DNA from: Mytilus trossulus
Lineage: Eukaryota
NCBI RefSeq assembly: GCF_036588685.1
Contig: NC_086374.1
Location: 103,044,001 to 103,108,000, forward strand
DNA: 64,000 nt
Direction: 5' to 3'
The notes under the pieces were generated by a model. It had not been told where the DNA came from. It searched no databases and saw only the letters and a list, made by a program, of their open reading frames with translations. Below, in pieces: positions 1 through 63,072 of this stretch (positions within the stretch are counted from its first letter, which is position 1; the number at the start of each line of letters is the position of its first letter). Both the position numbers and the translations under genes were made by a program.

Positions 1-622
1 CTTACAACATTTGTATAAACTTCAAGATTATAAAAAAACGGTTTTTTTCTAAAGTGAACATTGATTGGTTAAATATTTCTCAGTGTGTTTGAATTTGTTT
101 GTTAGCCTTTTGGTCATGAATGTTTGTCTCTAATATTTAATTAACTGTGCATTTGTATTCAGATATCGCAGATCAAATTTATTCGTTCATTGTGTAATCA
201 TACGTTTTTTGATTGAGTTAAGTCTGCCAATTGATATTTTATCGTATGTTTTTATATGTTGTGATGTTATGCTATTGTTTCAGAAAAAGGGAGAAGGTTT
301 GGGCCCATTAAAACGTTTAATCCCGCTGCAAATGTTTGCACCTGTCCTAAGTCAGGAATCTGATGTACAGTAGTTGTCGTTTGTTTATGTAATATATACG
401 TGTTTCTCGTTTCTCGTTTTGTTTATATAGATTAGACCGTTGGTTTTCCCGTTTAAATGGTTTTACACTAGTTATTTTGGGGCTCTTTATAGCTTGTTGT
501 TCGGTGTGAGCCAAGGCTCCGTGTTGAAGGCCGTACTTTAACCTATAATGGTTTAATTTTTGAATTGTTGTTTGGATGGAGAGTTGTCTCATTGGCACTC
601 ACACCACATCTTCCTATATCTA
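1..622 (+). mobile_element. Repeat family A (twister-bearing, fixed 3' end ...cacaccacatcttcctatatcta); copies at 11171-11527 - and 21513-21837 +
   Basis: Near-identical copies with variable 5' ends and a shared 3' end. Confidence 0.8.
271..374 (+). ncRNA. Predicted type-P5 twister ribozyme (repeat family A); cleavage U318/A319
   Basis: GGGA-GA-AGG...U-AA-UCCC-GC-[UGCA/UGCA]-CCUG-UCCUAAGU-CAGG-A, closed by GCUAUUG..UCAGA/UCUGA..CAGUAGU. Confidence 0.8.
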
Positions 623-1974
623 TGTTCTCCCTCACTACGTTCGTCCGAATATAAAGTAATTAATATTCTATGGCCTAACAAAGAACAAACGACATAAAGT
701 ATGTGTGCTACTCGCTATAACCTTTAATTCTATATAATACAACAATGTATGTACCACATACAAACATAATAACAATAATATCATAATTCCAATTACAAAT
801 TCACATTAAATCAACCGTGAATACACGTGTCTACTTTAGGCTATAGCGAGAGTCGATGGTCAGAAAGGTGACCGCACGGGTTTTAAGTGCGGACAAATGG
901 TCACATGTCATGAATATTCACGAACTACTTACGTCCGACGAACTAAATTTTATGACTACAATACAAATAAATGAGAGAAAATATAGGGCAGAGAAACAAA
1001 CCAAAAATAGCCAACAAAAGTTACTAGGTTTATGCGCGCCACGTCAACACAAGTCTAATAAGCGACGCTCAGATGAAAAAAGTTTGAAAACCAAAATAAG
1101 TACAAAGTTAAATATAACCGAGGACCAAAAGTTCTAAAAAGTTGTGACCAATACGACCAGGGTTATCCGCCTGAGACGAGAGTATCCTTATTATTTAGAA
1201 TAATCCATACTTTTGCAAACAGTAAATTTTATAAAATTACTATATAGAAGATGTACATGTTTAAATTGAGGTGGTGTCTAGCTACAGAAAAAACTGGATA
1301 CATTACAAAAATACACAGCCGTGTTAGCCAAAGCCAGTGCAATGCACAAAGTATACAGTGACGTCATATTTGAATTTTAAAACGAGTTCCCAAAATTAAG
1401 GAAGACACTTGGATGAAATTCAAGATTAGATTTGTATGAAATATCAAACATTTATTAATAACAGTAGAAATTACAATACGAATTAATATCAAATTGTAGT
1501 AGTAATTAGATAATTAATTTTATTATTTAGCTATGTCGGTGTTTCTTCTGAATCAAACTGTAAACTAAATATATCGTAAGCATATGGGTAAGCAACTCGA
1601 AAGACACATTGTCAAAGACGAAAATATATATTTGATTTTAGCTATAAGATATATCATGTTATATTTCCTACCAAAGGATGTTGTTTTTCTCTTGGTACCC
1701 CGGCTTCCTTTACCAATGAAAATAATAACCTCTACGAAATAACACAACAGTGATGAAAGGTTTCAATAATATTAATCACTAATTTTTTTGGAAAAAAAAA
1801 CTTGAAATGCTGCCGCTGGCGGGGTAAAAACACGCAATCTCAATGTTAGCAGTAATTTGATTACTGTAGAAGTCATAATTAGAAAGTTCCTAGTAATTTG
1901 GAAGACCACTGTCTAAATCATAATATGATCAACTATAGGTCTTTGCTTAATAATTTCAATTTTATCTTTTTTAG

Positions 1975-3167
1975 TTACTACAATAGATTTCACAGAGGTG
2001 CAAGGTCTATATAAAACAAATCCTGTAGCTGAAATAATAGGACAAGATTCTGATGTTTTTAGAGTCCAAACTGTAAACACGGAGATGGTTACTATTGCAT
2101 TGGACAAAGATTTGACGAAACCGAAGTATGAAATCTTTGTGGTAGTGTCTGTAACAGCTGATGGTATAGTGATACGAGATTTCAAACATATAACAATAAC
2201 AGTAAACAAGGACAGTGTTATAAGGAAAGAAATATTCATAATGGATGGAACATTGAAAGACAGTGTGGTTGGCCTCGTTTGCCAGTCGTGCTTATTATTT
2301 GAAAACATGACACAAATAGATCCTCATGATATCGTAACGGTACAAAACGATGGAGTTATCACAACATCAAAAACTATCGATTTAAATAGTATCCAAGGGC
2401 CCACAACAATAGCATATTCAACATATGTCGAAATTCAAAAACAATTTACTTCTGTTACCGTTGTTAATATTACAATTCATATCATACGTGCTGAGTTTGA
2501 ATGTGAGTTATTCGAAGATGGTGTTGCAAATACAGTTGTCGGTAACCTGAAATTAAATAATCCATTTTCAATTGATTCCGATTCTGAATTTCAAATAAGT
2601 GGAATGTCATTGACTCTTGGGTCCGTCGTTTTAGACTATATCGAGCAAATTAAAGTAACGAAAACACTCAGGATATCAATAAGTGACTATACATTTGACA
2701 CTACAATAATGATAAATGTACAAGATGTTAATGATAAAAGTCCAACGTTTATAGCCACACCGTATAATTTTTTTACATTGGAGTCGGCATACCCTGGGTT
2801 GATAGTCGGTGTTGTTTCAGCAATTGACCCCGATACGAACTCCGATTTGAAATTTAGGATCAATCCAGACGATAAATTGAGGATCAATGATTACGGTATC
2901 ATAACAATACGAAGTGGTTTTGGCACAAACGCAAATGGTTATAACGCCACTGTTACAGTGACTGACGGGTTGCATCCTGTAACTGAATTTGTAACTGTTG
3001 AAATTGAACAAACGACAACCAGTAATCTCCAAAATAAATTTGCTGGAAGTATTTCTGAAAATCAAAAAACTCCAAGAGTAATAGAAACCGTTTTTATCCC
3101 AAATTACAAAAACTATAAGTTCACAGATAGATCAGCATTTACAGATTTCAGTATTGACCTTCAAACG
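1975..3167 (+). CDS. Gene 1 exon a: divergent EC1-EC4 and start of EC5
   Basis: 404-aa ORF with QDVNDKSPTF and AIDPD; ttttag acceptor and ACG|gtaag donor. Confidence 0.9.
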
Positions 3168-6100
3168 GTAAGATTATACATTTATTACAAGATATTTAAT
3201 ATCATACATTAACGATTAAAAGTAAGTCAGATAAGCTATTTTTCACCTATCTTTCGTTTTATTCAACATTTACCCATCCGAAGTGGCCATGCCGTCAATG
3301 TCAATAATTTGTCCATTTTGTCACATCATAGTGTACTTGTGAAGCTGTGTTTTTGTTTAAGAACAACAATCGTTAAAGGAAGAATTTATTGTAACCTACT
3401 GAATTACAGAAGAAGTTGTAGATTAGATTTATGATATCTTCATTTAATCATCAAATTTCATTCAGGCAATTTCACAAAATTAAGTGCATCTTTAGATGGT
3501 AGTAAATGATAAGAAAACGCAAATTCCAAACCCATAAAAATGCCCGAACTATTACAAAAAAAAACACCCCAAAAAAACCCATATCAGAGAAAACAAGATA
3601 ACATTTTTCAATCCCAATTTTGTAGCATATTTCGACCTTCAGATTTTTTTCATTAAAATGCTATATTCACAAACGAATCATAATAAATGCATTAAAGAAT
3701 CGATTTTAGTTTATTCAAAATGATTAATAACAAAACATGATGTTTATCAAACGTTTATAATGTTATAATAAATAGTGGTGGCGATACAGTCATCATACAG
3801 TCATCATGGTATTATTCTTTGTAAATATATCTAAATCTAGTAGGTAATAACATTGGCCATTATTGTAACAGTTCATAGCACCCAGTAATTATTTTTTAAG
3901 GGTCAAGTTAAAAATGTAAGAGACTTTGACAGGGAAATGGAAACTGAGAGGGAGTTTAAATATACCATTGTAGCAAACGAGGATGGCGCACTGAAATGTT
4001 CATTAGTGGTAAGTAAATTTAACATAGATATCAGGATTAAAGTTTGTTACTTATAAGACAGATGTCCGTTTAACTTGTAAACGAAAATGACAGAAAAACG
4101 AAATACAACTCATGTGGGTTTATTATGTTTCGTAGGAAATCAATTTCGTAAATGTCGTTTTTACAGGTAAACCACGGCATTAAAAGAGGGACGAAAGATA
4201 CCAAAGGGACAGTCAAACTCATAAATCTAAAACAAACTGAAAACGCCATTGCTAAAAATGAAAAAGACAAACAGAAAAACAATAGTACACATGACACAAC
4301 ATAGAAAGCTAAATAATAAACAACACGAACCCCACCAAAAACTAGGGGGGATCTCAGGTGCTCCGAAAGGGTAAGCAGATCCTGCTCCACATGTGGCACC
4401 CGTCGTGATGCTTTTGTGATTACAAATCCGGTAAATAGTCTAATTCGGTAGGTCACATTCATGAAACCAACTCGTGATGGCGTCCGTAAAATTTACGAAG
4501 GGATGATTTCAACTTCACTATTTGGAACTCCTGGTTTAATAGCTTTCTTATCAAGAAAATCATAATAGGATATGCAAGCACTGGAATATCGTATCAATTG
4601 GGAAATATATACCCCTTATGCAGGTGCTGCTGGAATGTTGCTACTTAGAAATGGGAAGTTCACAATTGGAAAGCTGAAATCATCTCTTTTGTCGTAAAGT
4701 ATTGTTTTCAACCGACCCTCATTGTCAATTTCTAGATGTAAGTCAAGATATGAAGCCGACTTAACTGTATCTGTAGTATCCTTTATCTCCAATTCGATGG
4801 GATAGATGCGTTCCACATAGTCACCAAATTTTGAATTGTTTAGTGAAATAACGTCATCTATATAGCGGAAAGTAGATTTAAAGGATATTGCTAACTTCTT
4901 ATCTTTCTTCCTAAAAAGTTCCTGCATGAAGTCAGCCTCATAATAATAAAGAAACAAGTAAGCAAGTAGAGGGGCACATTAAATGTTTAACGGACAACAA
5001 TTTCCCCATAGCCTTGCAGGCAGAATTTGCAAAATCACAAAATCCAATACATAAGAACACGCAAGACTAAGTGTTCCTAAATCGACAAATACTGGTACCC
5101 ACGAAAATAAATGATTCCATAGCAACAATTTTAAATGAATATACAGAACAAACTTCTGAAACATATACTTGTACCTTGTCGTGCATGTTTAAATACCTAA
5201 CTGCATTTCACAATTTTGATCTCAATACATGACACTTCTATATGCTTTTTCATAATTTCATAAGGGACCATACAAGTCAAATGCATACTTTGATGGATAA
5301 TATATAAAAGCTAAGGTAGAAATTATTTCGTGCATTTTTTATTGCATTTTTAAAAAAATAAACAAATATGCGAGTTTGATAATTTTGTATACGGAATTGA
5401 CCTTCCTTACATTTGACAACATCTATACCCTTTCGCTTTAATATCAGAGAGTCACACTTTGTTTTATAAGATTTTGCGCATTATCTTTTGTAAAACGATG
5501 ACTAATTTATTTTGCTATTTTTATTTAATATCTGTCAAAAGAAAAAGAATTAAAGAAAGATACGTTCAAGGTAGTTTTATAGTTACGGATGCATTTGATA
5601 ATTCTTGTTTTACTTTTTCATTAGATTTACACATATTTATTGCATGTAATTGACAGGTAATAGGAGAGATAACTATTACAGTGACCGATCAAAATGACGA
5701 ACCACCTGTATTTGCCAGCCATTCTTATACAGCCACGGTTTCAGAGAACGCTCTTAATGAAAAATTGATGGTAAGGCAAGATCAAATAGATTTATAAACC
5801 CTCGCGTTTTTTTATGAACATATACTACGGTTTATGTTTTGTTGACAGGGTTTATCCCCCATTGTATGACATAAGGTAACGCCTGTATAAAGCCAGGCAT
5901 ATGACACTTGTATTTTCAAACACTAATCCAATCTTAACTTATAGAATTGCTGTATATCAAAAATCGATATAAACTGACTCGACAAAACAAGTCCAGGCAA
6001 AACCTAGAAAATCTGACATGTTAAAAAGAAATCAAAAACATAAGTATATAATGTAATGTTGGACGTAATACGTCCTCTGGTTGACTGATAGTGGTTTGTC

Positions 6101-9100
6101 ATATACATTATTTGTGTCATGTGAAAATGACGTTATCAACGTTTTTCGATGATTTATTCCGTCTTAAAATGAAATTTAGAATTAAATTAGAAGGCATGAC
6201 TGTTATATTTCTTTTCTTTTTACTCGAAATAACATCACAATTGTGGTGCTTACTTAAAAATAGACCGCTACACGGGTTATTCAGTGTGGCACACATTTTT
6301 GATGTGTTTCCTCCATAGTCAGAAAAAATATTGCAGTAATTTCTTAAATAGCAATTGAAAGTATATAATGAAATATTTGAATTCCATTTATGTATTAGGT
6401 TGTTCCTGAAATATCGACGACTGATAAAGATTTGAATCCTACAGTAACATATAGCATTTCAACAAATACTAACAAATTCGCCATAGATTCATTTACTGGT
6501 AAGATACATATTGTAACATATTGTATATAGATAAAGGAAGATGTGGTATGAGTGCCAAGAAGACAACTTTTCGTCCAAGTCACAATTTATAAAAGTAAAC
6601 CTTTATAGGTCAAAATTGTCTTTATTTTGAAATATTTAATTAAGAAAACATTCAGAAACATACCCTGAACATTACCTTATTACAAAAAAGTAGAAAATGG
6701 GAATATCTAACACATTCCCGCTTAGTAATAGATCTACAATCGAACAAAATCACACACATATTCGATGTCTGTCGGTATTGTCGCTCCCAACAGTGTTGAC
6801 GTGCGTACATTATGATTTGGTCACTAACACACCACCCTTAGTAATTTGGCTCTATGAGCTTCTTCTAATGACTGTGCTTTAATTTTATGACCCTGCATCG
6901 AAGTTAAAATTTGACATTTCACTGTTTAATGCTTTCCCAGCCGTAAAACATTTATTATAATTCCTTTTCTAAATAGCACGTTTTGTCCATCACATTTTCC
7001 TTCAAACCACACGCAAATTGTTGTCAAAGGAAAAACCTTTATTTGAAGTGGTGTTCAAATCTATGGGTTCCACCAACGTAAGCGGCGGCGACGATGTAAA
7101 ATGGCGTTATTCAATTATAATGATACGGAAAAGATCTGCCATAGATTTGGAGAAAACAAAAATCTGTCATAGATTTGATTTATTTGACGTATGTAACGTC
7201 ACTTTTCCCATACATTAGAAATCTGCAATCGATTTGGAACCCGCCGTAGATTTGAGTCCTTAATTTTTTTTTTTGAGTACATGCTTTTTTAACTGTTTAT
7301 TTCAGACTTATTGTGATTTCGATATACGTTTTAGAATATCAAATATGAGAATTTGAGTCATATCAAATCAAAAAGCTAGTGCCCCATAAATATGTGTAGC
7401 ATATTTGAATAATGTTATGTACATTCTATCAATCATTGTTTTGTTTTAAAATAGGAACTATAGCAACACAACTGGGACTCGACAGAGAAACGGAAGATCA
7501 CCTAAATGTTGAAGTTGTTGCATCAGATGGTACAAATTCCGCAACAGCTACAGTTACTGTCAAAGTACTGGATAAAAATGACAATACACCCCAATTCAAT
7601 TCTGGTCAAAGCAGGTAAATTCTGTTTGAATGATGAATTTGTATTATAAACTTACCGACTATAATATGATTTCCTTGATATATAAATCTGGTTAAATTAA
7701 TGAGTGGTGATTGAGATAAAAGCTTAATAATAATTTGTTTGGGTTTTGTTTGTAGTTCATAAAAAAGAAAATGTGGTATGATTGCCAATGAGACAACTTT
7801 CCACAAATCACTAAAATGACACAGACATTAACAACTATAGGTAACCGTACGGCCTTCAAACCCATACCGCATAGTCAGCTATAAAAGGCCCCGATAAGAC
7901 AATGTAAAACAATTCAAACTAGGAAAAAACTAACTGCCTTATTTATGTAAAAAAATGAATGAAAAACAAATATGTAACACATAAACAAACGACAACCACT
8001 GAATTACAGGCTCCTGATTTAGGTTATTCGTGTATTCTATGCAAAAAATTTCGTTTTTTTTTTATTGTGAAAGTATTACAGTGTAATAATATCTTTTAGC
8101 ATTTTTTTTATCACATCCATGACTCAAATATATACACTACGTGTTAAGACGATATTAGTTAATTTATGTTAAATTACAGAAATATTTAAACACAAATATA
8201 CATGTAATTTAATCAAGATAAAACAAAATTGAGAATGGAAATGGGAAATGTGTCAAAGAGACAACAACCCGACAGGAGAGCAGAGAACTGCAGAAGGCCA
8301 CCAACATGTCTTCAATACAGCGAGAAATTCCCGAACCCGGAGGCGTCCTTCAGCTGGCCTTTAAACAAATATAAATACTAGTTCAATAATAATGAACGCC
8401 AAACTAAACTCACAACCGTATACTAGAAACTAAAATTAAAAATAATACAAGACTAACAAAGGCCAGAGTCTCCTGACTTTGGACAGGCGCATAAATGCGG
8501 CGGGGTTAAACATGTTTATGAGATATCAACCCTCCCCTATACCTCTAGCCAATGCAGAAAGTAAACGCATAACAATACGCACATTAAATTTCAATTCAAG
8601 AGAATTCAGAGTCTGCTGTCAGAAGATGTAACCAAAGAAAATAAACAAAATGACAATGATATAAAAAACATCAGACTACTAGCAGTTAACTGACATGCAG
8701 CTCCAGAATTCAATTAAACAGATTGAAAGATTTTGTCTTTATCATATTAATATCAGACACAATCCGTCCGTTAGGGGTTTAGTATCATAACATCATAACA
8801 TATATGAAAAGAACATAAACCGTGTCATGCCAACAACTGGTTTTTGAATAAATGTCTTCAGTTTCGATGCAAAGACCCTATAAGTGAGTAAATATTAAAG
8901 CCAAAATATGCCATCTTTAATGACCTGACAACAGTATTGTAACTATATCCCTTCTTAATATGTCTTTGTTAAGGTTTTGATAGCTTCTGAGGTGAATATT
9001 GACATGTTTTGCTTTATAAAGAATATTTCGATAAAATATATGTTTAAAAGGTTAAAGATGATGCATTTTCACGGAAACATTTACATTCTTAATATTATGA

Positions 9101-12100
9101 TACATACTTGTTTGTATTATGTTTACAAGCTGGACATAAAATACATGAGACAGACAAAACCAATCTGAATACAAATCAACTATCCTTGATGATTTTTGTT
9201 TTATGAAATTGAAAAAAAAAAAACAGTTATGGCCAATGACTAAGTTTTCCTTTTAAGCTTAAAACCTCAAATTGTGTTCTTATTCGCTTAACAATCAAAT
9301 AATTCAACAACATTAAGCACGTCTACACAACATTGGCATTTAGCAGTGTTAAATTTCTAAACTAAAGTGAAGCTTTTAATAAAATGCTTCTGTATCAGAA
9401 AAAATATCAAAACAACACTTTGTGCCGGTTAAAGCGACATCTTTTAAAAATAGATATAACACGCCTTCGAACTTTGCGAAACACACGTGACAGGTAATCT
9501 TTGTTTCAACAAATCACAAACATCGATTTTGAATACACGAGTTCGATAACCGTGTAGGATATATTAGAGGCAATAAATTTGAAAATTTATTAGGTTATTG
9601 TTTCATTGAAGTGTCGTCTCGTTGAAAATTCTACTCATACATCTGCTTAATGTTTGATAAATTTTATTAATAATTGAAACATCTTATATTTCTCTCAGTA
9701 TGACAGTCTCTGAAGGTTCATCTATTGGAGCAAGTATTGGAAAAATGAGTGCTACTGACATTGACGAAGGGAAAAATGCAGAAATTACTTTTGACCTCGT
9801 CAGTAATAATGGTGGTCCTTTTAGAATTAACCAAACAACTGGAGAAATAACTGTCACTGGAAAATTAGACCGTGAAACTTCCGAGACATATGGAGTGAGT
9901 GTATATGCACGAGATAATGGTATATCAATAAGATCAAGTTCCATGTCAGTAACGATAACTGTACTTGATGTAAACGACAACCCACCAGTGTTTACTATAG
10001 ACGACCTTAAAGTTGAATTTGAAGAAAATAAGGATTGTTCCAACCAAATAGCAACTGTTATTGCAACTGATGCAGACAAAGCTGGTACAAGTAACAGCCA
10101 GATAACTTATTCATTGTTAAGGTTAGAATTATTCTATCTGATTTATTTGTCAGTGCATCATATCAAGCGATAGCAACCATGTTTTGTATATAATGTTGTA
10201 AAAGTCATTATAGTGAGCTGAGTTCTTCACTGGATTGTCAATATAATTTTTACTTTAATACCAAAATTCGCGGCTCAATGTTCGAGCCAAACCGTTGCTG
10301 TTTCTTCTCTTTATTACGGAAAAATACATTATCACTTTAAATGGAGGTGACCAGATATCCATGCATATTGCAATCACCGCGTTTTTACTAAGGTCACTTG
10401 CATACGGAAAATATGTCGGCGAATTGCTTCCTGGAAGGAAGCTTCCGGGAAGCAATTAAAAAGTGATAAACGTCTTCTTAATTTAGACTTATTAAAAACA
10501 ATTCTTCGAAAAAAGGTATATGTGCATAAGTTTAAGGTGGTATGGGTGTCTTCTTCTATCTTGGATTGTGAAAAACAGAGACCCAAAGGTCCAGATTTTC
10601 CATCGGGTTAGCAACATTTGATGCAGGAATGCAGATATTTAATGTGAATTTGTATTTATAAGAACCAATTTATAAGAATATAACTTATAAATATTAATAT
10701 TTTTGCAAATGTTAATTAATTTTGGTTGATTTTTTTTGTTTTTTTTTAAGCCCCTGCTTTAAAAGGGGGGGGATATTGTTTTACCTCTGTCTGTCAGTCC
10801 GTCCGTCCGTCGTACCGTCCGTCAGTCCGTCTGTTCGTCCGTCCGTCCGTCAGTCCGTCCCATGAAACTTTCGTAACATTTTTCTCAGGAACTACACATC
10901 CACCCTTTCTGTAATTTGGTATCAACATTTATATATGTCAGCCATACCGTGTGATGCGTTTTCAGATTCATCACTTGACAACTTCCTGTTTACCGAACAC
11001 TTGTATAATTTTACACATGATAACCAAGTTGAAAATTTTCGTCACATTTTTCTCAGGAACTACAATACAAGGATTTCTGAAATTTGGTTTCAGGATTTAT
11101 ATAAGTCAGCTATACCGTGTGATGCGTTTTCAGATTCATCACTCGACAACTTCCTGTTTACCGAACACTTAGATATAGGAGATGTGGTGTGAGTGCCAAT
11201 GAGACAACTCTCCATCCAAATAACAATTTAAAAATTAAACCATTATAGGTTAAAGTACGGCCTTCAACACGGAGCCTTGGCTCACACCGAACAACAAGCT
11301 ATAAAGGGCCCCAAAATTACTAGTGTAAAACCATTCAAACGGGACAACCAACGGTCTAATCTATATAAACAAAACGAGAAACGAGAAACACGTATATATT
11401 ACATAAACAAACGACAACTACTGTACATCAGATTCCTGACTTAGGACAGGTGCAAACATTTGCAGCGGGATTAAACGTTTTAATGGGCCCAAACCTTCTC
11501 CCTTTTTCTGAAACAATAGCATAACATTGCATATTTTTACACTATTAATATTATCCACTTGCGGCGGGGGTATCATCAGTGAGCAGTAGCTCGCAGTTTC
11601 ACTTGTTTAAATAAGCATTTTAAGGGGAGGTAACTCTAAAACAGTGCATTTTCTGAAGGATTCTACATGGTATTTTCCTATTTTGTATTTTAACCGGAAA
11701 AAACGTACGGTAACCCTATCTTTTCTTTTGATCTTCTCAAAGCAGTGCCTGAAAGCTATCTTTTCCTGAAGTATTTAATAATTCTCCCATACCACCTTGA
11801 TAATGAAAACTATCCATTTCATTTTGAGGTTTAAGATGACTTTAAGTTCATAATACTAATTATTACATTTTGATTCTTTTTATTTCAATCATTTTAAACA
11901 GTAACGTTAAATCAGTGATATTATAGTATATTCGCCTTATATCACATTATAAGATGGTAAATATTTGTTGTGCATTATTTGGCATAAAGAGATTTTTCAT
12001 AGTTTGGTTGATATTAAACGCAAAGGACAAGGTACGATAAGGCCCGTTTTTTGCCCACTATTTTCTCATTTTCTAGATATTAGTTTGGAAAGCCACTTGT

Positions 12101-15100
12101 CACGTTAAAATATTCCTTTAGGTTTGAACCTTATTTGGATGAACTTCAAAACCATTAATTTCAGAAAATGGGTGATGTGAAAAGGGGGGGGGGGGGGGGG
12201 GAGTGTGAGCATAAAAACCCGTCAAAAGAAGGAAAATAACAATTTTTGACAATAAAACTTAAAATTTAATAGCATGCGCCTACGTGACCCTGAAAACGCG
12301 ATTTAGACAGCAAAAACAGTTCTTATGACATTGGAATAAAACAATTCCTCGGTCACTTTGGCGCAGGCACTAAAACATAAAAATTTGTTTAACCCCACTC
12401 ACCTAAAATTAGTGGTTTTGAAGGTCTGTCAAACAAACTTCAAACTTCAGGGAGTATTTTAACATAATTAGTAGCTTTCCAAAACATAATTTGAAAATGA
12501 GAAAAGAAGGGGGGCCAAAAACAGGCCTTATCGTTTCTTGTCCTTTTCCTCGCAAAATTAATTTCCTCATTTTGATCATTCCATTGTGAAAAGTAAAATA
12601 GCAAAAACACCGAACTCCAAGGAAAACTCATAATAGACAATTCATTATCAAATTGCAGGATCAAATGATTTAGTACATGCATTTTAATTATTTTTTAAAT
12701 TCAATAGAGCAATAACATATAACTTTAACGTGTAAGCCCGTCCAATCAGGTCATATTGTTCCTGTAAGAAATGAACCATTACATACCCTTCTATAAGTTA
12801 TGTTTCAACTTTCAGTGGAACGCAACATTTTACAATGGATTCATCGGGTATACTGAAATGTAAAACTACCCTGGACTACGAAGATCAATCATCCTACCAG
12901 ATTACAGTAAAAGCTCAAGATAATGGGTTTCCTTCATTAAGTTCAAATCAGTCTGTGACCATCAATATAAAGGATATCAACGACAACGCTCCAATCTTCC
13001 AATCTCCTCCAACTACAATTACTATCAGGTTTGTGGCCTATGTGAACTAAAAACTTATACATATGTAAATAGTTATTAAAGGTACAATGATTATAATGTA
13101 ATACACCAGACGCGCGTTTAGTCTACATAAAACTCACCAGTGACGCTCAGATCAAAATAGTTATAAAGCCAAAGCCAAAGCCTTTATATAAAGCCAAACA
13201 AGTACAAAGTTGAAGAGTAAAGGCAACAGTAGTATACCGCTGTTCAAAACTCATAAATCCATGGACTAAAAACAAAATCGGGGTAACAAACTTAAACCGA
13301 GGGAAACGCATTTAATATAAGAGGAGAACAACGACACAACACTGAAATGTAACACACACAGAAACGGACCAAGCATCAGACAAAATCCCATGAGAATGAC
13401 AAATATAACATCAAAACCAAATACATGAATTTAGGATAGACAAGTACTGTGACACGTCTTATCGCAATGTGAATTTACACACAAAAATAAGAGAAAACAA
13501 ACGACGCAACGTTGAAGAACATTGAGGAATCATAACCTATCTAAATTTAATTAAATGCAACGATCATTAATTGGTCATGTTGCTTGCCTCATAGATATAT
13601 TTCTTCTCAATGTGTGATTTTTAACATACAAATCAAATTTTACATTGTTGTTTTGAGTTATCCAGTAACAGCTACACCGCATTGGGGGGAAACGAAAAGA
13701 AAAATTTAGAGTGTCGTTGTGACTGCATCGTGCGTAATTTTTGTATGTTTGTAACTGCTGAAAAATGCGTTTTAATGATTTATTCAGTCTTAACGTATTC
13801 CGTAATTTCTATTGAATTGACACTGCGTTGCATTAGGAATGATAAAATCCAAATAAAATTGCTAACTTGGAATGAAGATATTAATCGAACATAACTGTAG
13901 CATATTTTCGCATTTAAACATAGATATGATGATATATTTGAAATATTCTATTCGATAAAAGTTTATATAACAGCTTTAGACAAACAAACTGATTTTGTAT
14001 TTGAAAGGATATTCCATTTTTTACTATGTAACATGAGTTTTCCTCACCTTTTTGTACAGATATTTATCATCAGCAGCGGAACGTGTTATTGAGGTCTTTA
14101 AAGTAACTGATGAGGACTCTGGAGAGAATGGTAGGGTGACATTCAGTATCGGTGGTTCAGCAGCGGAATTTCTGAATATTGACCCAATTTATGGTATTTT
14201 GCGTACAAAAAGTGACAAAAACAATGGTGACTATGCTTTACAAGTTATCGCTATGGATAACGGTAAATCTTCGAAGCAGACTACTACTTCAGTGACAGTA
14301 AAAGTAAATAAAAACGTAGTTACGACTCAACCAATTCAATTTACACAGCAAGTAATAAACATGACGATACAAGAGAATCGTCCAATCAACTCTCAATTAG
14401 AAAGTGTTTCATCAAAAGTCACCAAACCATCTGGTGTAACTTTGAACTACACGATTATTGACAGCAGTAGTTCAGACGTGGCATTTGTTGTACATTCAAC
14501 ATCGGGTATGGTGTCCTTATCAAAACAGGTTGACAGGGAAACAATCCACACTCATGAATTTGTTGTTCTTGTGAAAAACCAGGCTGCACCAAATGAAAGT
14601 GATCTTGCCTTAGTAAGTTTAATTATAATTCGTAAGTACAATAGATTGATTAGGTATACGTCTTTTCCTGTTAGTTTCAAAAGAGTTTATATTCACTTGT
14701 CGTATTCATGAGTGGTTGTCTAGATTTCAATTTTGGTTTCAATAAAGACAAAATCGGTAAAAAAAAAAACCTCGTGTAATTGTCATTCAATTGAGTGCAT
14801 AATATTTAATAATTTTCTCTCTTTCTGTACTTCTTATCGTCGAACTTTTCAATAATCGATGCAGCTTATTGATAAAGGACTACGCCTTCCCGATACACCC
14901 GAGTCAAACCTCTGTCGTTTCCTTAGTTAGTTTTTGCTGCATATCAACTTTTGTCAAAAAGCACAGCCGGAAATGACAAGCTTTGAAAAAATTCAACAGA
15001 AAAACCAACAATCTTATCTATGATAAAACAAATATGACAGACTGTTCACGACGACAACATCTATAATACAGGCTCATGTCTAATGACAGGTACATTCAGA

Positions 15101-18100
15101 ACGTGGCTGGGTTAATTGTGTTTGTAAGCGCTTATTTCTAAATAAACTGACAGTACAATATAATAACGATCTGTAAAATTTAGTTGACAATAATTGACTG
15201 AAACACAGAAATAAATAACACGAGAATAAAAATGAAGATTAGTAACGATCTAAAATACTCACAGTTATTTAAAGTTACTTCAAGCCAATAACAACTAATA
15301 GATAAATTATTTTCTTTCCGAATAATCTTCAATAAAGGCCTTACTAACATATTTAGTTTAACGATATCATAAACAGCACGAGCAATTTATTTAAGAATTG
15401 AATGCTTCTTTTTGTAAATTTATTGGGGTGTGAAAGCGTTGACCGAAGTACATTTTGTATGAAGCGCGTAATTATTACATTATGCAATGTTAAAGATATA
15501 GATAAACAACGTCGAAAGGATATACGATTATAAGAATTCATAAATGTTTAGCAAAACTATCTATTTAAGTTTTACTTTATCAACAAAAAATCATTGCAAG
15601 AACCGATACGTTTGACCAGTAAATTTTGCATCGTCCTATTTTTGTCTTCTTACTTTAAACTTTAAAAACACCGAGAACATATGTCATGTATGTATGAGCG
15701 AAAAAATAAAAAACAAATTGATATGAATATTTTATATTTCGGTCGTGGGTAAGGAGGCGGATGCTTTAAAAAGCTGTACGAAGTTTAAAATGTCTGAACT
15801 TAAAAAAAGCCGGCCTCACAACAGGTTCAAATGTAGATAAATGATGAAATCATAATCTTTCAGTCAGTTTAATTGAAGTCTGGAGCTGGCATGTCAGTTA
15901 ACTGCTAGTAGTCTGTTGTTATTTATGTATTATTGTCATTTTGTTTATTTTCTTTGGTTACATCTTTTGACATCAGACTCGGACTTCTCTTGAACTGAAT
16001 TTTAATGTGCGTATTGTTATGCGTTTATTTTTTTACATTGGTTAGAGGTATAGGGGGAGGGTTGAGATCTCACAAACATGTTAAACCCCGCCGCATTTTT
16101 GCGCCTGTCCCAAGTCAGGATCCTCTGGCCTTTGTTAGTCTTGTATTATTTTTATATTAGTTTCTTGTGTAAAATTTGGAAATTAGTATGGCGTTCATTA
16201 TCACTGAACTAGTATATATTTGTTTAGGGGCCAGCTGAAGGACGCCTCCGGGTGCGGGAATTTCTCGCTACATTGAAGACCTGTTGGTGACCTTCTGCTG
16301 TTGTTTTTTATTTGGTCGGGTTGTTGTCTATTTGACACATTCCCCATTTCCATTCTCAATTTTAATTTCTAAAAAAAAGAAAACTTTCCCACCAAAAATA
16401 TTAAATGATATAAATTTTTATTTTGCGGACGTCATCACGACTTGATAGATCGTTATGGAATATATCCGTTTCACGGATGATATCGGATATGTTCCTTATG
16501 TCGCAACTACAAACTCCTTTTCTTTTCACGAATGTAACCTACCAAATTAGGCTATGTACCGGGTTTGTAATAACACAAGCAGCACGATGGGTGAAACATA
16601 AGGAGCAGGATCGATCTGCTGACCCTTCCGGAGTACATGAGATCACTCCCAGTATTGGTGGTGGTCGGTTTGTTAAGTCTTAAGTTTTATGTTGTGTACA
16701 ATTATTTGTCGATTTGTCTTCCATCCAAATCAAGTTATGTCAAACTTATCTAAGAAGGTGCAACCTATATCTGGTCGTTCTTCGGGTTCCATAAAGAACA
16801 GTCAAATATAATGATTAGATGTATACTACTGTTGCCCTAATTTATAAACTATATGGAACACATGTCAGGACTGATTTCATTTGGTTCCAGAATAACCAAT
16901 TTTAAAGATACCTTAAATAGTAATTTGACCCCCCATCCCTTCATCCAAATTGATATAAACGGCCGAAATTTAATTATGTGTGGTATGACAGAATTTGCAA
17001 TTAAGACAAACAATTCAATAAACTATAAATAAACCTACGGCTTACAACAAAGATCAAAACCTTTGTTCTATTACATCTTTTTTTAAAGAGACAACAATAA
17101 TTAAAAGTTGATGACATACTAGGAACCCATGTCAAATAAACAAAAAGCACAGACACCGGTTTTTTTTTTTTAAACCACCAACATAGTAAATTTCCGGGCT
17201 TTTTTAAAAGAAATAAACATTAATGCAGATACTTACCAATGAAAATTAAATATTATGAACATGAAACTAATTTTTCAGTATTTATAAAAAGAAACTTTTC
17301 ACAAACATTATAAATTATGATTGTAGGTGAGGGTCTATATACAAGACGAAAATGATAACAAGCCGACATTTGTTAGCCCAGCTTATTTCTTTAGAGTGAA
17401 CGAAAACAAAGCTATATCCACTGTAGTAGATCCACAAGGCAGAGAGATAGTAGCAAGAGACAATGACATTGGTGATAATGCTGTAATTGAATTTCAATTA
17501 TCTGGAGATGGTAAGTGCACGGATTTTCCAATGATACAGGTTTGTCAATACTTTTCAAAAATTTATAAGTGTTTGTGAATTCCTCTAAATAAATGTGTTT
17601 TAATTTCGAAATCATTATACATTGTTGAGCATATAATATATATATATATAAATATGGAGATGTGATATATAATTGTCAGTGAGACAACATCTTAATAACA
17701 AGGGACCAAATGGTATAGAAATTAACAATAGGTCACCTTAGTGCCTTCTATATGTGTTTATATTTTGTATTCATTAAACAAATTTGCCATCCCATTCCAT
17801 ACAGCATACAACACTTATAAAGCATGATACATGCACTATGGTTTCAATTCAACTGCAGCATCTGTTCAAATGTACTTTGACTATGTTCCATTTAAAAATT
17901 CCCAGTTTATACCTGGAATAGTCTTATTTGAGAAAGAGGGGCGAAAGATATCAGAGGGTCATTAATTTAAAATAAATTACCGAAAAGTGAAAAGACAAAC
18001 AGACAAACAATAGTACACAAAACACAACATAGAGGGGACGCATAGCGTACTCTGTCTTTATACGTGACCTGACTACATTTAATAAATCGTTTAGTACATA

Positions 18101-40660: not shown

Positions 40661-41122
40661 ATATTATAATCACATATGACAGTACGAGTAGAGATTACTC
40701 CTATAAAGGTATATAATTTCAAGATATTAAATCTTATTAGATTTTATTATGGACAAGTATTTGCACAATTTTTAAGAAAACGTCTAGGCCTTTTAATCGC
40801 TAAATTTCAGACAAAAACTAGAATTTCAACGGTAAGTTATTATTGCGTGTCTACATTACCGTTACATTTCATATTTCTAAAAAAATTAAATCAACACTTT
40901 ATGGTTCTCATGCGTCCAAAGCGCTTGTTTTATAAGCATTCAATAGGAACGATAAAATTTGAATATTTGAAAACAAAGGATGCATAAGGACCGGAAAAGT
41001 GAAAGAGCTATTATATAAGCAAAATGAATCTAAATATTTAATAATAGCCAAAATCCATCTTTATTGAACTATGCCTGCGGGGGTTGAAACCTTTTTTTCC
41101 TAAAAATATCTAAATGTCTAAT

Positions 41123-41545
41123 TAGTTATCAAAATTACCAGGATTATAATTTAGTTCGCCAGACGCGCGTTTCGTCTACATAAGACTCATCAGTGACGCT
41201 CATATCAAAATATGTATAGAGCCAAAAAAATATGAAGTTGAAGAGCATTGAGGATCCAAAATTCCAAAAAAAATGGTGCCAAATACGGCTTAGTAATCTA
41301 TTCCTGGGATAAGAAAATCCTTTGTTTTTCGAAAATTTCAAAGATTTGCAATCGGGAAATTTATAAAAATGACCACATAATTGATATTCCTGTCAACACC
41401 GAAGTGTTGACTACTGGGCTGGTGAAACCAACGGGGACGAAACGTCCACCAGCAGTGGCATCGACCCAGTGGTGTAAATAGCTATAAAAAATACCAGGAT
41501 TATAATTTAGTACGCCAGACGCGCGTTTCATCTACATAAGACTCT
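41123..41545 (-). mobile_element. Non-LTR retrozyme, 356-nt monomer family; fragments also at ~1010-1290, 13068-13217, 22862-22960, 29530-29762, 37245-37320
   Basis: Direct repeat with period 356 (AGACGCGCG at 41161 and 41517) containing a hammerhead. Confidence 0.82.
41156..41199 (-). ncRNA. Minimal type I hammerhead ribozyme (intact core)
   Basis: Same as 22897-22940; truncated partner at ~41512-41544. Confidence 0.88.
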
Positions 41546-48975: not shown

Positions 48976-50466
48976 ATGTTATCGACTTTAGACAGGAACA
49001 TGACCACTGAGTTCGAGATTCAGGAATATGAACTTGGAGCTCCAGGTTCTTGACTTTGGACAGAAACATGAACTTGTAGCTTGACGTTTGTCTTTGGACA
49101 GGACATAAACATGAGCTCTGAGTTCCTGTCTTGGAACAGGAAATTGATCTAAAAGCTCAAGGTTGTTAACTTTGGACAGGAACGTGAATATATTAAGCAT
49201 GTCTCAGTTTTTAAAGAGAGAAAAAGAGTGAACCGCTTTTTTTTTTTAAATTAATCTTTAAAGCGAGCAATATTACAATACCCCTAATAAAACATCGACT
49301 AAATAAATACTTGAAGGGTTACATACATGTCGGTATGAAATTTTATGATTTATATCATACATTAAATGCTCTTATCAAATATATTTTCGTATATCGCTAC
49401 CGTAATGCATGAGTTTTTAAAATGACAGTGAATAGTTAAGATATTTAAGGTTGTGTTATAAAACAATTTTACATCAATATCGTAGATTATCTGGAAAAAC
49501 GAGATAAAGTTAAAACACTTTAAACAGATTGAAAATATTATAACTGAATTCTTGGATAAGCATATAAGGAAGTAGAAAATCCGAAACTCGCAAACGAGGA
49601 AAAAAGTCCAAAATATCTATTCTTTGCAACAGTTGGTGAACTTTTTATTTTCAATCATACCTAATTTAAGTGACGGTAAGTGCTATATTTCTTTAATATT
49701 CATTTTTTAGTCTTAGAAATATCATGTTTTTGAAACATTTCAATTTGCCATTGTTATTTATGTGCATTATCAAAAATCTGGCTGTTGCATAATATATCAT
49801 ACATGTAATAGGAATTATTTGCCTTTTCCAAGAATATAAAGATAGAAAATATATTCATAAATTGCTTTGAATTTATTTTTTAAAACAATTTTTAAAAACT
49901 TCATCTCCAAAGCTAGTCTAGTAACCGCTCGGCTCTGTCTATCATTTCATTATTCTCACGTCTGTCCAAAAGGCCTATTGTAGAAACTTTCGTCAAAGTT
50001 GTCCCCGGCTTCTATGAATTGAATACTGATACAAGTCAATGAACGCGTACACTTATTGGCAATCATACCGAATCTTCTTTTTTATGTAATTGCCGTGTGA
50101 ATTTGCTCTAGGAAAAATCTATAGTTTCCAACCCGGATAAGTTTCATGAGTACAAATGTATGTTGTGTTCAAACTATAAATCTGACTCACGTTTACTTCT
50201 GCTTCAGAACTAAACTGTACTTTGATGGAATTGTTGGATATTGAAAGTGAAATGATCGATATATTCATTGGCGGTGTGCATGATCCAATTTGAGGAGATG
50301 ACGACATTTAAATTTCTTTTGAAGAACCATGGTACATGTAAGTTTTCCAAATTAAAAAAAAATAATCCTGTTTTTAAAATGCATTTTAGACTCGACTGTG
50401 ATTTTTTCGTATTACTAATAACTTGATGTTCAGATTTTGTTTATCTCCTTTTGTTAGGTCATACGT

Positions 50467-51144: not shown

Positions 51145-52594
51145 ATATTTTTAATATGACATTGTGAGTCGACAATCACTTAAAATAAGACATTTATATC
51201 AACAATTTTAAATTTATATCTCAGTAAGTTATATTTCAAATCCATAAAACAATATTTGAGAACAGGTAAAGATAAATGTTTATTTTGTGGACCACGTGGG
51301 TAGTAATGGTACAGAACTATATGGCTATCAAGATTTGTCGTACCTGCTATTGCGAGATCAATACCGATGCAGGGCGTCTGTCGGTCTCGTTCTCCTATCA
51401 ATTGATGTAATAACACTGTTGTCTGTACTATGGTCGGGTTGTTGTCTCTTTGACACAAGCCCCATTTCCATTTTCAATTTTATTTTTACTGTACAACAAT
51501 TCTGGCCACACAACCAACCCTCATTAAATAAGCATGAGAGATACGGCAATAGAGCATAGTAAACGATCACTCAAAAAGCATAGTTTCAGGTTAGGGGAGG
51601 GTTGGGATCCTGCTAACATGTATAACCGATCCGGCTAACTTGTTTAACACCGCGACATTATTTATGTATGTGCCTGTCCCATGTCAGGAGCCTGTAATTC
51701 AGTGGTTGTCGTTTGTGTATGTGTTTTTATTTTTTTCGTTCATTTTTTATATAAATAAGGCCGTAAGTTTTCTGGTTTGCATTGTTTTACATTATTATAT
51801 CGGGGCCTTTTGTAGCTGACTATGCGCTATGGGTTTTGCTCATTGTTGAAAGCCGTACGATGATCTATAGTTGTTTTAAATGTCTGTATCATTTTGGTCT
51901 CTTGTGGACAGTTGTCTCATTCGCAATCGTACCACATCCTCTTTTTTATAGTTATTTTCTCATAAATCTGTAATTTTCTTAATTTTTTTGTTAAATAATA
52001 ACCGATATTATAGAAAAATATAGAAAAAGAAACAATCAATGAACCTTTAACAATCGTTGCCTGGCAATTATTTGAAATCTTTAAATGAAATTTCACCTAT
52101 AACTGTTTATGATCGTTAATCTTTGCAGATTGAATTACAGGGATCTGTAAGAGAAAAGAAAACATGGTAAGCAAATAAAACTTTAAAAAAAACGACAGGT
52201 GTACATCAATAAGTAAATACATATATTGTAAAACACTTTACCTAACATGTATTGTATAATTTTCTAATGTAATAGTACGAAAACAATATGACAATGTATA
52301 GCGAAATATACAGAGAACTGGCTTGCAGTTTATTTAATTTTTAAGTAGAGTTATTGAGAAAGAATTATTCAGTATTATTTACCTGTAATCTTAAGTTTGT
52401 AGGTGTATTCCCAGCACCGTCAGATACACACGGAGGACCAGAATAAATTTTTCCATTGTGAAGATCATGGACACTATCCATCCTTGCTAATTGAGCAATT
52501 TTTTCTTTTGGTACGTTACGACTCAATAGTTAAAACTTAAATTCTTTAGTATGTTGAAACGTTCATTGAATTTAGTGATTGGTTAACGTCACAA

Positions 52595-60200: not shown

Positions 60201-63072
60201 AATGTCCAATTCAAATTTTCAAGTTCTTATACCATATTCATTCTGTCTGAAACCAATGCTGTGTCAAATATGTATTGTCGATTATCGTTCAGACCTGTAA
60301 TACACTTAAATGTTGTTTTCATACTTGCCTTGAATGTTCGGTCTCTGTAGTCGTATTGAGCTGCGCTCATTTTAAAGTAAATTTCGTTTTCTTGCTTATT
60401 CTTTCTCCTTTCAGACGATGAAACCTTTTTAAACAAAACAAAAACAATAAGTAAAGGTGTTATATTTTCTTGGCGTTACCTTCGTACTGCATATGAATGA
60501 TTCATTGATTAACATTAAGGAAAAGATATTTTATTTATTTTTACATAAATCAAATCGATTCCTAATCGGAGGCAGACTGTTTACTACTCTAAAGAAGTCG
60601 TTCTTACTGGGCGGCAACAAGTCATTGAATATATCTTATTTAAAGAGTAATGAAAAGTAAAATCACAAAAATACTGAACTCAGAGGAAAATCAATTTGGA
60701 AAGTCCATAATCACATGGCAAAATCAAAAAACAAAACGCATCAAAAACGAATGGACAAGAACTGTCATATTCCTGACTTGGTACAGGCATTTTCAAATGT
60801 AGAAAATGGTGGATTAAACCTGGTTCTATAGCGCTAACCCTCTCACTTTAATAATAGTCTCATCAAATTCCGTTACATTTACATGATGCGTTAAATAAAC
60901 AGTCACAATCAATAAAATAGTCAAAATATGGGAACATCAGTCATCATCGTATAACAATTTAACAGGACACAACAACATCTACTATCTACGAACACATGGA
61001 TTGATTTGAGTGTCTGATGTCAGAAAAATTATATACGTCACATAAATTTGTCGTTCAATGTGCATACAATAGTTATCCAAAGTACCTGGATTATAAACAA
61101 TTTTAAATTTTACATAGGCAATGAGCGCAGACAGGGTTAAAAAATCAAAAGTATGTAAGAATAAATTACAGAAATCAAACTAGTCCAAAAGTTATACATA
61201 GAATTTATGAGAATCCAAAACTTTTAAAAGGAACAATTTAACAGGACACAAAAACCTATCCACGATATAATATTGTACTATAACAAGTGATCGTCCATTT
61301 GGTTATTCGAATTCATAGTTGTTAGCTTTTTTACCATATTTATATACGTAACTTTTTTCAATACAGTTGAATGTAATTGAAAACAAAATTGTACTTGATT
61401 TAAATTATGATTCTTATAAAAATAGATTTGACTGTTATAAAATTATTCCCAGTTAAACGATGTGAGATCAGAATAATGAAAACTCATAATATGTGTTATC
61501 GTTTGAGTTAAACAGTATTCGTTTACTGTAATTAAATTATGAAATTATTGCGAATTTTATTTTGCTGCAAATATTACGACTGGATGATGCATTTTGATAA
61601 CTGATACATATACCTGGATGCAGCTTTTCCAGAATTCGAAATTAGTAACATCGCATTTTTGTCCGTTCTTGAAAATCGCAATCAAAAATATGCTCAATAA
61701 TTTCTGCGTTTGCAATTTTGTACTATCGTTATTGATTTAAACGTTCTACTCTACACTGGTCGTAGTTTCAATAGCTGTAAGACTCCGATTCAAAATACGA
61801 GTTCGAATAAAAATCATACAGGCAAGCTTTATGACAAAATCATCAACTAATTTGTTTATTTTAATGAAGGGTTGAAGAAAGTTTTTATTTCTTCCATTAA
61901 TCCTATTTAATAGATCTTTTTAAAATTCAAATACTTTCACAACACTCTTTTGCTCGTGTTATCGGAAAACATTGTCAAAATAAATGGTCCTGGAGATGGC
62001 ATGTCAGTTAACTGCTAGTAGTCTGTTGTTATTTATGTATTATTGTCATTTTGTTTATTTTCTTTGGTTACATCTTCTGACATCAGACTCGGACTTCTCT
62101 TGAACTGAATTTTAATGGGCATATTGTTATGCGTTTACTTTTCTACATTGACTAGAGGTATAGGGGAGGGTTGAGATCTTACAAACATGTTTAACCCCGC
62201 CACATTTTTGCGCCTGTCCCAAGTCAGGAGCCTCTGGTCTTTGTTAGTCTTGCATTTTTTTTATTTTAGTTTCTTGTGTACAATTAGGAAACTAGTATGG
62301 CGTTCATTATCACTGAACTAGTATATATTTGTTTAGGGGCCAGCTGAAGGACGCCTCGGGTGCGGGAATTTTTTGCTACATTGAAGACCTGTTGGTGACC
62401 TTCTGCTGTTTTTTTCTACGGTCGGGTTGTTGTCTTATTGACACATTCCCCATTTCCATTCTCAATTTTACTTATCTTACTGATGAATCATTGAAATAAT
62501 ACTATTTTATTTTTTATTTTGAAGAAGTTTTTTCCCCAATGTGTAGTCTTGAGGAACAAAAAAAGTATTATCAATTGAATGATTGTAAATTGTTTCAAAC
62601 TGTTTTGAATTATAAAAAACACTATTGTATAGCCTTGATTTGTGCGTGTTAAGCATACCCTGGTTTGCAATTATTTGATGAAGAAAGCAATAAATTAATT
62701 ATTAATTTCTAGAATGATTCTGAATAGCCATTTAGCGATAACCTTCTTAGTAATTCCAATCATTATCTCTTTCTTATAAACTTGTGATTATTTGTCCGAA
62801 TGTAGAATTGTACAAAAAAAAAACGACGCTTCTTTGATTTTAAACATCTCAGCTATTCAGTTAAGCATTTATTTAGCAATTGAAAGAGTGTTCATGTTAG
62901 CTTTTATTCACACAATTTTACAACTAGAGCCCTTTAGATGTACCATTTTAATTTACAGGTTATTGGCATAGTGACTATTTTAGTAACAGATGTAAACGAT
63001 GAACCTCCTATATTTGTTGGTGCTCCTTACAACGCTACAATTGAAGAAGAGGATAAGGATAAAGAAATATTG
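53974..63072 (+). CDS. Cadherin gene 2 (3'-partial), tandem paralogue of gene 1: mucin-like Thr-rich segment + EB/EGF-like module + EC repeats
   Basis: join(53974-54276,56421-56498,56798-57981,59609-59710,62959-63072), phases consistent. The last three exons match gene 1 exons a-c in boundary and sequence (e.g. KYDIFVVVSVTVDGIVIRDF vs KYEIFVVVSVTADGIVIRDF). Confidence 0.87.
55179..56041 (+). mobile_element. 5'-truncated Penelope-like retroelement (family C), decayed
   Basis: FRYIDD...YGVYISQLIRYSRA, with stops and frameshifts; same 3' UTR as 4182-4460. Confidence 0.85.
56421..56498 (+). CDS. Gene 2 exon (PTKLFSQEYHKVSINISESGPIGQQ)
   Basis: Start of EC1 (F...ISE..PIG); phase 1-1. Confidence 0.82.
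56798..57981 (+). CDS. Gene 2 large exon (paralogue of 1975-3167)
   Basis: 425-aa ORF with LDVNNKAPVF and AFDLD; ACG|gtaag donor. Confidence 0.9.
59609..59710 (+). CDS. Gene 2 exon (GEIRNKRAFDREK...CSLA)
   Basis: Paralogue of 3901-4008. Confidence 0.87.
60656..61260 (-). mobile_element. Repeat family E (twister-bearing); short 3'-end fragments at ~12590-12680 - and 22605-22662 +
   Basis: Shared end ...gttcagtatttttgtgattttactt. Confidence 0.65.
60758..60860 (-). ncRNA. Predicted twister ribozyme (family E)
   Basis: GAGAGGG...UAA-UCC-AC-CAUUUUC/GAAAAUG-CCUG-UACCAAGU-CAGG-A. Confidence 0.65.
62150..62239 (+). ncRNA. Predicted twister ribozyme (family D)
   Basis: Same fold; compensatory change in P5 (GACUAGAGG/CCUCUGGUC). 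Confidence 0.78.
62959..63072 (+). CDS. Gene 2 exon (VIGIVTILVTDVNDEPPIF...)
   Basis: Paralogue of 5657-5770. Confidence 0.87.

Follow-up and report, generated by a model that had tools for sequence, protein, structure and literature searches.

A probable twister-fold RNA module in the 3' untranslated regions of Naiad-type Penelope-like retroelements of Mytilus trossulus

The 64,000-nucleotide (nt) stretch of Mytilus trossulus DNA analyzed here (RefSeq assembly GCF_036588685.1, contig NC_086374.1, positions 103,044,001 to 103,108,000 of the forward strand) is referred to as the window, and coordinates are those of the window unless a locus is named. Self-comparison of the window sorts a set of repeat copies into four families, A, A2, D and E, which have a structured block in common. 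This shared block is very probably a twister-fold module of the 3' untranslated regions (UTRs) of Naiad-type Penelope-like elements (PLEs). Its sequence also makes it likely, at a lower level of assurance, that the module is self-cleaving in some form and acts as a twister ribozyme processing tandem Naiad transcripts. The twister class, including its type-P5 form (Rfam RF02684, clan CL00120), is said to have been described by Roth et al. in 2014.

The module is oriented along the sense strand of the element and is composed, in order, of the 5' strand of P5, P2', a GA dinucleotide containing the general-base G, T1', an insert, the N|AA of the predicted cleavage site, P2, T2, a P3 hairpin, P4 with its 8-nt loop L4, a single A and P5', where P denotes a helix and T a pseudoknot. 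Its ends sit in the long P5 stem of 9-12 bp. An earlier note on this DNA had listed ten copies with such a layout; all ten are present at their positions with the elements ordered as described, and six more partial or decayed copies occur in the window. The pairings quoted there were correct (P2 as GGGG/CCCC or GGGA/UCCC, T1 as GGG:CCC or AGG:CCU), and complementarity holds, as had been claimed, for the P3 helix in its four versions and for all four P5 sequences. The statement that the families are otherwise dissimilar stands for D in comparison with A2 and A, where the module is the sole common sequence, and for E in comparison with the others, which share only the P4/L4 stretch with it, but not for A and A2, which are 70-73% identical over the 3' ~280-400 bp. 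A covariance model (R1) was built from an alignment (A5) of 20 lineage representatives, five of them window copies, whose reverse transcriptases (RTs) are 40-100% identical. On the window, R1 matches the listed copies at 41.6-73.7 bits and also picks up partial or old copies at 21506-21571, 63680-63746 and 39903-39965 (minus strand).

The repeats had been taken for the ends of retroelements, constant on the 3' side and truncated to varying extents on the 5' side, and this is borne out: families D, A2 and A are 5'-truncated 3' UTRs of Naiad-type PLEs. Naiad elements in this genome are ~4 kb long, encode an N-terminal GIY-YIG endonuclease followed by an RT, and are often arranged head-to-tail. 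In the genomic head-to-tail array L046 (L numbers label the sequences fetched in this analysis) the units recur with a 4021-bp period. The first frame of the element (5949-7340 of L046) contains IIYLLT-TGA-NKPGCGIQYVGET (GIY-YIG) and a CNC motif, while the RT frame, which follows after a frameshift (7516-8955, 480 codons), contains LPKLHK, FDFSTLYTTLPH, GIPMGTNCAP, YLDD and YDKRDDF and is succeeded by the 650-nt D sequence. Pfam yields only a weak RVT_1 match on the element, the GIY-YIG and RT assignments resting on motifs. Genomic D copies have a common 3' end (…TTCTCAATTTTAT) and reach to variable extents upstream into RT coding sequence.

Three in-frame TGA codons of family D align with conserved cysteines of intact relatives, namely the cysteine before GIY-YIG, the first CCHH cysteine and the CX2-5CxxC finger. 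A selenocysteine insertion sequence (SECIS) is found ~55 nt after the stop in the full-length copy (9010-9074 of L046; 30.4 bits, E 6e-4). This combination of in-frame UGA codons and a SECIS just after the stop resembles that of the clam selenoprotein Naiads (Craig et al. 2021, PMC8557442). Truncated D copies scatter SECIS elements through the genome.

Upstream, A2 copies continue into an RT sharing 50-54% identity with that of D, and over ~40 genomic loci the P4/L4 motif is located ~380 nt (D) or 308-616 nt (A2) past the RT C-terminus. Marine metagenome contigs were also scanned with an RT alignment, giving 80 loci. The position of the module overall is 310-920 nt after the RT stop. The exact module of family A occurs in L081/L082, ~740 nt past a Naiad RT with 67-68% identity to that of D, and E-type modules accompany RTs that are 40-44% identical to it (L130, L122). 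These last two loci have one long open reading frame (ORF), uninterrupted within the contig in L122, encoding an N-terminal GIY-YIG, a CxC motif (CDC in L130 and CSC in L122, where L046 has CNC), PADKASN (DKA) and RT; at the position of DKA, present in both, the D copy reads frameshifted. This genome contains copies, with open frames of as many as 927 codons, to which the RT of L122 is 100% identical. Some of the "metagenome" contigs thus derive from this species, and the L122 lineage is resident in this genome and probably active.

Judged by sequence, the Naiad lineage to which the E-type module belongs is present in this genome in intact form, the exact E subfamily of the window being placed by way of related E-type modules. 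Family E is very young, many genomic copies being 99-100% identical. Elsewhere in the genome E copies have ~274-bp tandem units (93% and 88% identical) upstream of the module, comparable to 60953-61265 on the minus strand of the window, which suggests a non-autonomous element with internal repeats.

The 3' sequence is repeated upstream of the ORF, as a pseudo-long terminal repeat (pseudo-LTR), in L130, L122 and L105, and R1 found the module in loci missed by the pattern search, including the pseudo-LTR copies upstream of the ORF in L122 and L105. Where the RT is at least 49% identical and sufficient 3' sequence is available, every locus but L093 (RT 51%) contains the module. In the group with RTs at 38-45%, again given sufficient sequence, it lies downstream of the RT in L130, L135 and L136, and in the upstream pseudo-LTR in L122, the contig of which stops 58 nt past the ORF. 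Exact P4/L4 matches in the genome amount to 14,977 for the D/A2 type and 15,207 for the E type, with 0 for reversed controls. One genomic array (G000:C1:1156667-1158362) repeats the E-type P4/L4 string every 37-39 bases, apparently a minisatellite grown from part of the module.

The UTRs of D (650 nt) and A2 (741 nt), from elements with RTs 50-54% identical, align only over a 143-nt module that includes P5 (77% identity, E 1e-22). A further lineage, with a P4/L4 of the form ACCG-UUCCAAGG-CGGU, is represented by over a dozen contigs of separate projects and has 0 matches in this genome even with one mismatch, and the module has thus been kept in at least one other organism.

Conservation of the fold was evaluated in A5, which spans P2' to the A after P4 and in which the pairs of P2, P4, T1 and T2 were counted. 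The predicted pairs form in 92.3% of cells, compared with 34-48% after sliding the partners by 1-3 columns. Covariation scores 0.404 in the alignment and 0.131 in shuffles, none of 500 of which reaches the observed value, a control that overstates significance because the sequences are related, in contrast to the slid control and the number of pair types, which are independent of kinship. T2, a 2-bp pseudoknot of L4 positions 7-8 with the NC after P2, is 100% paired: pair 40-96 is AU in 6, CG in 6, GU in 6, GC in 1 and UG in 1, and pair 41-95 is CG in all 20. P4 (4 bp, 8-nt loop) is also 100% paired, and two of its four pairs covary (CG/AU/GC and UA/CG/AU). For T1, formed by L4 positions 2-4 with the 3' strand of L1, 90% of the cells pair and the ends switch between GC/AU and among GC/UA/AU/UG; within the window's own families it is 97% paired, as GC, AU, UA and GU. 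P2 is paired in 82.5% of cells, its inner pair being GC, UA, AU, CG or UG.

The nucleotides A1 and A2 following the predicted cleavage site and L4 A5, A6 and G7 are invariant, and NAA is at the expected place in 20/20 representatives, preceded by U, C or A at position N-1. The general-base G of the GA that immediately precedes the T1 strand is retained in 19 of the 20, the exception being a decayed genomic copy with UA. The module is under selection for the twister pairings, and the twister fold that the earlier note had assigned to the shared block is upheld by pseudoknots that covary across deeply diverged lineages and across organisms.

These constraints bear on an alternative in which the Naiad 3' UTR would harbor in this module a conserved structured RNA that is twister-like in fold and has lost, or never had, cleavage activity, functioning as an RT recognition site or as a signal for RNA pairing or packaging. 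A scaffold of this kind would not need the invariant A1, A2 and L4 A5/A6/G7, nor a general-base G kept in nearly every lineage, and the best-kept pairings are T1 and T2, which build the active site. This alternative is considered unlikely, even though non-LTR-type reverse transcriptases often recognise 3' UTR structures, P1 is replaced by two palindromes (described below) that suggest RNA-RNA pairing, family E has multiplied at 99-100% identity with weakened P2 and T1, and scores with Rfam models are sub-threshold.

When short stretches (125-190 nt) were compared with all 4227 Rfam families, Twister-P5 was the sole meaningful match, with 21.8 bits (E 0.008) for family A, 19.3 bits (E 0.045) for family D and 24.1 bits (E 0.0017) for the metagenomic variant L138, which has the exact canonical loop UCCCAAGC. 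In this comparison with the Rfam twister models, which had been proposed as a check, Twister-P5 is the best match for A, D and L138, and all scores are sub-threshold. The Rfam alignments put GA, RGG, UAA, P2, GC and P4/L4 exactly where they had been placed before, and score is lost at the P3 hairpin (absent from the model), at the U-A pair in P4 and at the last loop base. Family E gives 20.1 bits with the twister-P1 model (threshold 67.2). The type-P1 reading of family E in this alignment was ruled out, the supposed P2' and T1' strands being unpaired; in the P5-type reading, E has a perfect T2 and a T1 with two pairs followed by an A.G mismatch. A run of RF02684 on the whole genome gave no match, too few candidates having been scored for it to be useful.

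It is highly improbable that the likeness to twister arose by chance or that the block is some other known RNA, for example the head of a tRNA-derived short interspersed nuclear element (SINE). Loose motif matches alone mean nothing, as a loose home-made descriptor, dropped as evidence, gives ~12 matches per shuffled window, and the lack of a gathering-level Rfam match also speaks for chance; yet no other Rfam family matches, T1 and T2 covary over 20 lineages to an extent that the shuffles do not attain and drop sharply when slid, and the block is the sole conserved part of otherwise unalignable UTRs. As to the SINE head, ARAGORN finds 0 tRNA in the window.

The site of the P1 hairpin is occupied in every lineage by two self-complementary blocks. 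The first (pal1) starts 1-2 nt after T1' and is a perfect palindrome of 8-10 nt in 20/20 representatives, in at least 11 versions. The second (pal2) ends at N-1 or -2 and is perfect in 14 of the 20, the remainder having the near-palindrome AACC(A/U)GGUU. The chance expectation for such palindromes is ~0.05 per sequence. Their central bases covary, as in UGGGCCCA vs UGGAUCCA within family A, and since a hairpin loop would have no need of such covariation, pairing between copies is the simplest reading.

This pattern raises the possibility, put forward tentatively and on sequence grounds, that the module is active only when two copies pair, either in two RNAs or in tandem units, with P1 formed between the copies by the palindromes and the monomer inactive. 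Such gating would agree with the near-universal perfection of the blocks and the covariation at their centers, with the head-to-tail arrangement of Naiads, and with the behavior of metazoan PLE hammerheads, whose helix III is 1-2 bp long with a palindromic loop and whose activity is confined to dimers or trimers (PMC4209133). The palindromes could, on the other hand, have their function in the DNA or be bound by a dimeric protein, and P1 is reported as dispensable for twisters (PMC11662667), so that monomers may cleave anyway.

If the module is a twister that processes tandem Naiad transcripts, the RNA would cut itself between N-1 and A1, leaving product ends with a 5'-OH and a 2',3'-cyclic phosphate. 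A transcript spanning a partial upstream copy and a full copy would be cut at both modules to release a unit-length RNA, which in L046 would extend from ~5294 to ~9314 (4021 nt). The halves of the module would be held by the 9-12 bp of P5, by P2 and by T1, bringing the RNA ends together and favoring re-ligation or circularization, as has been proposed for hammerhead retrozymes. The role would be that proposed for the hammerheads in canonical PLE pseudo-LTRs. A more speculative extension, which we regard as doubtful at present, is that Naiads replaced the PLE hammerhead with a twister working only in pairs, whose cleavage would yield unit-length RNAs that can be circularized and copied, explaining the head-to-tail insertions.

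A number of observations weigh against cleavage by the module. Searching the whole window with Rfam at gathering thresholds gives no twister match, and the 19-24 bits obtained with Twister-P5 fall short of the gathering threshold of 37.6, so that by Rfam's rule the modules are not members. Complementary P1 strands were looked for in cis and none were found. The second pair of P2 is mismatched in the ACCG-type and E-type lineages; P2 of family E comprises only three positions, the middle one a U.C mismatch, and T1 in the window's E subfamily ends in A.G where relatives have A-U. That the young E family multiplied well despite its weak P2 and T1 indicates that full activity may be unneeded. Minimum-energy folds of D and E pair T1'+UU with AA+P2, an arrangement that would rival the active fold, and fold z-scores are modest (-0.3 to -2.2). 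Finally, seven loci lack a module at E<=1, these being L093 and, with RTs at 38-45%, L120, L124, L128, L129, L141 and L144. The hairpin of T1'+UU with AA+P2, considered as an alternative structure, was discarded, as neither family A nor the E-like relatives with GGU preserve it.

The misfits (no P1 in cis, competing folds, mismatches in P2 and T1) lower the estimate of activity but do not exclude it. According to McKinley 2024 (PMC11662667), imperfections in P1, P2 and P4 are well tolerated and P1 is dispensable, wobbles in the pseudoknots are tolerated while mismatches there are harmful without abolishing activity, a base other than U is tolerated at N-1, and ~94% of the candidates cleaved. 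Truncated copies starting at the predicted cleavage site were 1 in ~40 sampled (63703, next to an A-rich flank), a frequency that is not significant and gives no support either way.

The Naiad module resembles type-P5 twisters in the order of its elements, in ending in P5, and in its GA, RGG, N|AA, P2, NC, 4-bp P4 and both pseudoknots, as well as in the 8-nt loop U-N-C-Y-A-A-G-N. Unlike them, it invariably has a P3 hairpin, the last base of its L4 is in most lineages U or G instead of C, two self-complementary blocks take the place of the P1 hairpin, P5 is long, and it resides in a retroelement, with copies in the tens of thousands. A twister is also known from Perere-3, an RTE-type long interspersed nuclear element (LINE) of Schistosoma, at its 5' end, with P1 completed by the target-site duplication (PMC8501958). 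Both cases concern a twister-class ribozyme in a retrotransposon thought to process its RNA, but the Naiad host is a PLE, and the module has a P5-type topology and is located in the 3' UTR and pseudo-LTR.

Minimal type-I hammerheads are found in the pseudo-LTRs of canonical PLEs and in animal retrozymes (Cervera and de la Pena 2014, PMC4209133; 2020, PMC7229834). The Naiad module is like these in the kind of host, in its location in a terminal repeat or 3' region and in its massive copy number, and like the PLE hammerheads it has the helix at the cleavage site reduced to a palindrome, pointing to dimers or tandem transcripts; it differs from the latter in ribozyme class, fold and catalytic core. 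Craig et al. 2021 (PMC8557442) reported Naiads to be without canonical hammerheads, having searched for hammerhead motifs only, and the word twister is absent from that paper. Our own search of the D 3' UTR for a hammerhead likewise found none, the hammerhead matches of the window sitting in other repeats. McKinley 2024 (PMC11662667) states that twister candidates now exist for bivalves, without discussing retroelements. No paper linking twisters to Naiads was found among those searched, the bivalve candidates in the supplement of McKinley 2024 not having been compared with the modules.

What appears to be new here is the host element of the twister, its position in that element and the substitution of palindromes for P1. 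Bivalve genomes are dominated by Naiads, which have been singled out as the PLE clade without a hammerhead, and this raised doubt that ribozymes matter for these elements. To our knowledge, twisters are widespread and the sole biological role proposed for one is that in Perere-3 of schistosomes. If the twister reading holds, two unrelated ribozyme classes would have been recruited for the same job in PLEs, a strong argument for self-cleavage within the PLE replication cycle, and twisters would gain, in the Naiad module, a second and very abundant natural context, this genome alone having over 30,000 copies. Dimer gating of the twister could be tested directly through the covarying palindromes.

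Within the window, family A is represented on the plus strand by a 5'-truncated Naiad 3' UTR at 264-625, with weak A2 homology back to 208. Its module with long P5 (271-374, core 289-357, predicted cleavage at 318/319) has all key positions intact and scores 21.8 bits with Twister-P5 and 60.2 bits with R1. A copy on the minus strand at 11167-11527 is 97.8% identical to it (twister 11417-11520, core 11434-11502). A third copy, at 21509-21836 (plus strand), is truncated within the P1-position insert, and its twister portion (21509-21588) is without the P5 5' strand, P2' and T1' and has a mutated L4 (UCCUAAAU).

Family D copies are 5'-truncated 3' UTRs of a selenoprotein-type Naiad. That at 15841-16367 (plus strand; twister 16040-16130, core 16053-16120) has its predicted cleavage site at 16083|16084 with A at position -1 and gives the highest R1 score, 73.7 bits. 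A second plus-strand copy, at 38994-39622, contains a twister (39279-39369, core 39292-39359, predicted cleavage 39322|39323) with an A-to-U change at L4 position 6 and, upstream of it, a SECIS-like element at 39017-39081 (plus strand; SECIS_1, 24.8 bits). The copy at 61990-62473 (plus strand; twister 62150-62239, core 62162-62229, predicted cleavage 62192|62193) has a P2' shorter by one G and scores 19.3 bits with Twister-P5. On the minus strand, the copy at 8221-9013 includes the last ~51 RT codons (8861-9013). Self-comparison also identified a D tail truncated downstream of the twister at 23981-24149 (plus strand).

Disabling changes are present in several window copies, among them the module of this minus-strand D copy (8461-8550), in which a C-to-A change at L4 position 4 breaks T1. 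The A2 copy at 40219-40665 (plus strand), a 5'-truncated 3' UTR of the second Naiad lineage, has a twister at 40303-40411 (core 40319-40393, predicted cleavage 40349|40350) with a P4 pair broken by its 3' strand CAGC. In the decayed A2 copy at 44435-44761 (plus strand; twister 44455-44562) UAU replaces UAA and T1 is broken, and that at 51587-51958 (plus strand; twister 51587-51706) has a duplication inside the P1-position insert. Additional A2 sequences are a copy in which homology begins at the A 3' of the predicted cleavage site (63703-64000, plus strand, continuing past the window end), several tails, among them one truncated within L4 (7761-8023, minus strand; window self-comparison), and an old inverted A2-like copy at 39629-39969 (minus strand) with a decayed twister (core 39903-39969, T2 as AC:GU, R1 36.1 bits). 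The single E copy listed lies at 60653-61265 on the minus strand (twister 60758-60860, core 60771-60846, predicted cleavage between 60816 and 60815; R1 60.3 bits).

Copies of the A, A2 and E-like types have an extra block directly after the P5 3' strand (GTTGTCGTTTGTTTATGTG and variants; 375-395, 40412-40430, L014, L072), which is not seen in D. Tandem repeats with CCTGTCCAAAG at 49064-49172 (minus strand) match R1 weakly (17.6 bits); the rest of the module is missing and this is not a twister.

Separate from the twister families, type-I hammerhead motifs occur at 22897-22940 (minus strand, 33.0 bits), 41156-41199 (minus strand, 28.6 bits) and 29592-29635 (plus strand, 26.7 bits), against an Rfam threshold of 34. 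They are contained in repeat blocks of ~100 nt, two of them 356 nt apart, with related blocks at 13066-13168 and 41475-41544, and these blocks resemble mussel hammerhead retrozyme/PLE repeats. A long near-perfect hairpin at 30160-30283 (minus strand) matches mir-302 (29 bits) and MIR1514 (32 bits) weakly, far below threshold, and probably represents an inverted-repeat element. On the plus strand, cadherin domains are encoded in open frames at 14052-14711 and 1998-3212 (PF00028, E 2.5e-19; weak CELSR2-like match), and the window probably lies inside a large cadherin-type gene, with the repeats in its introns.

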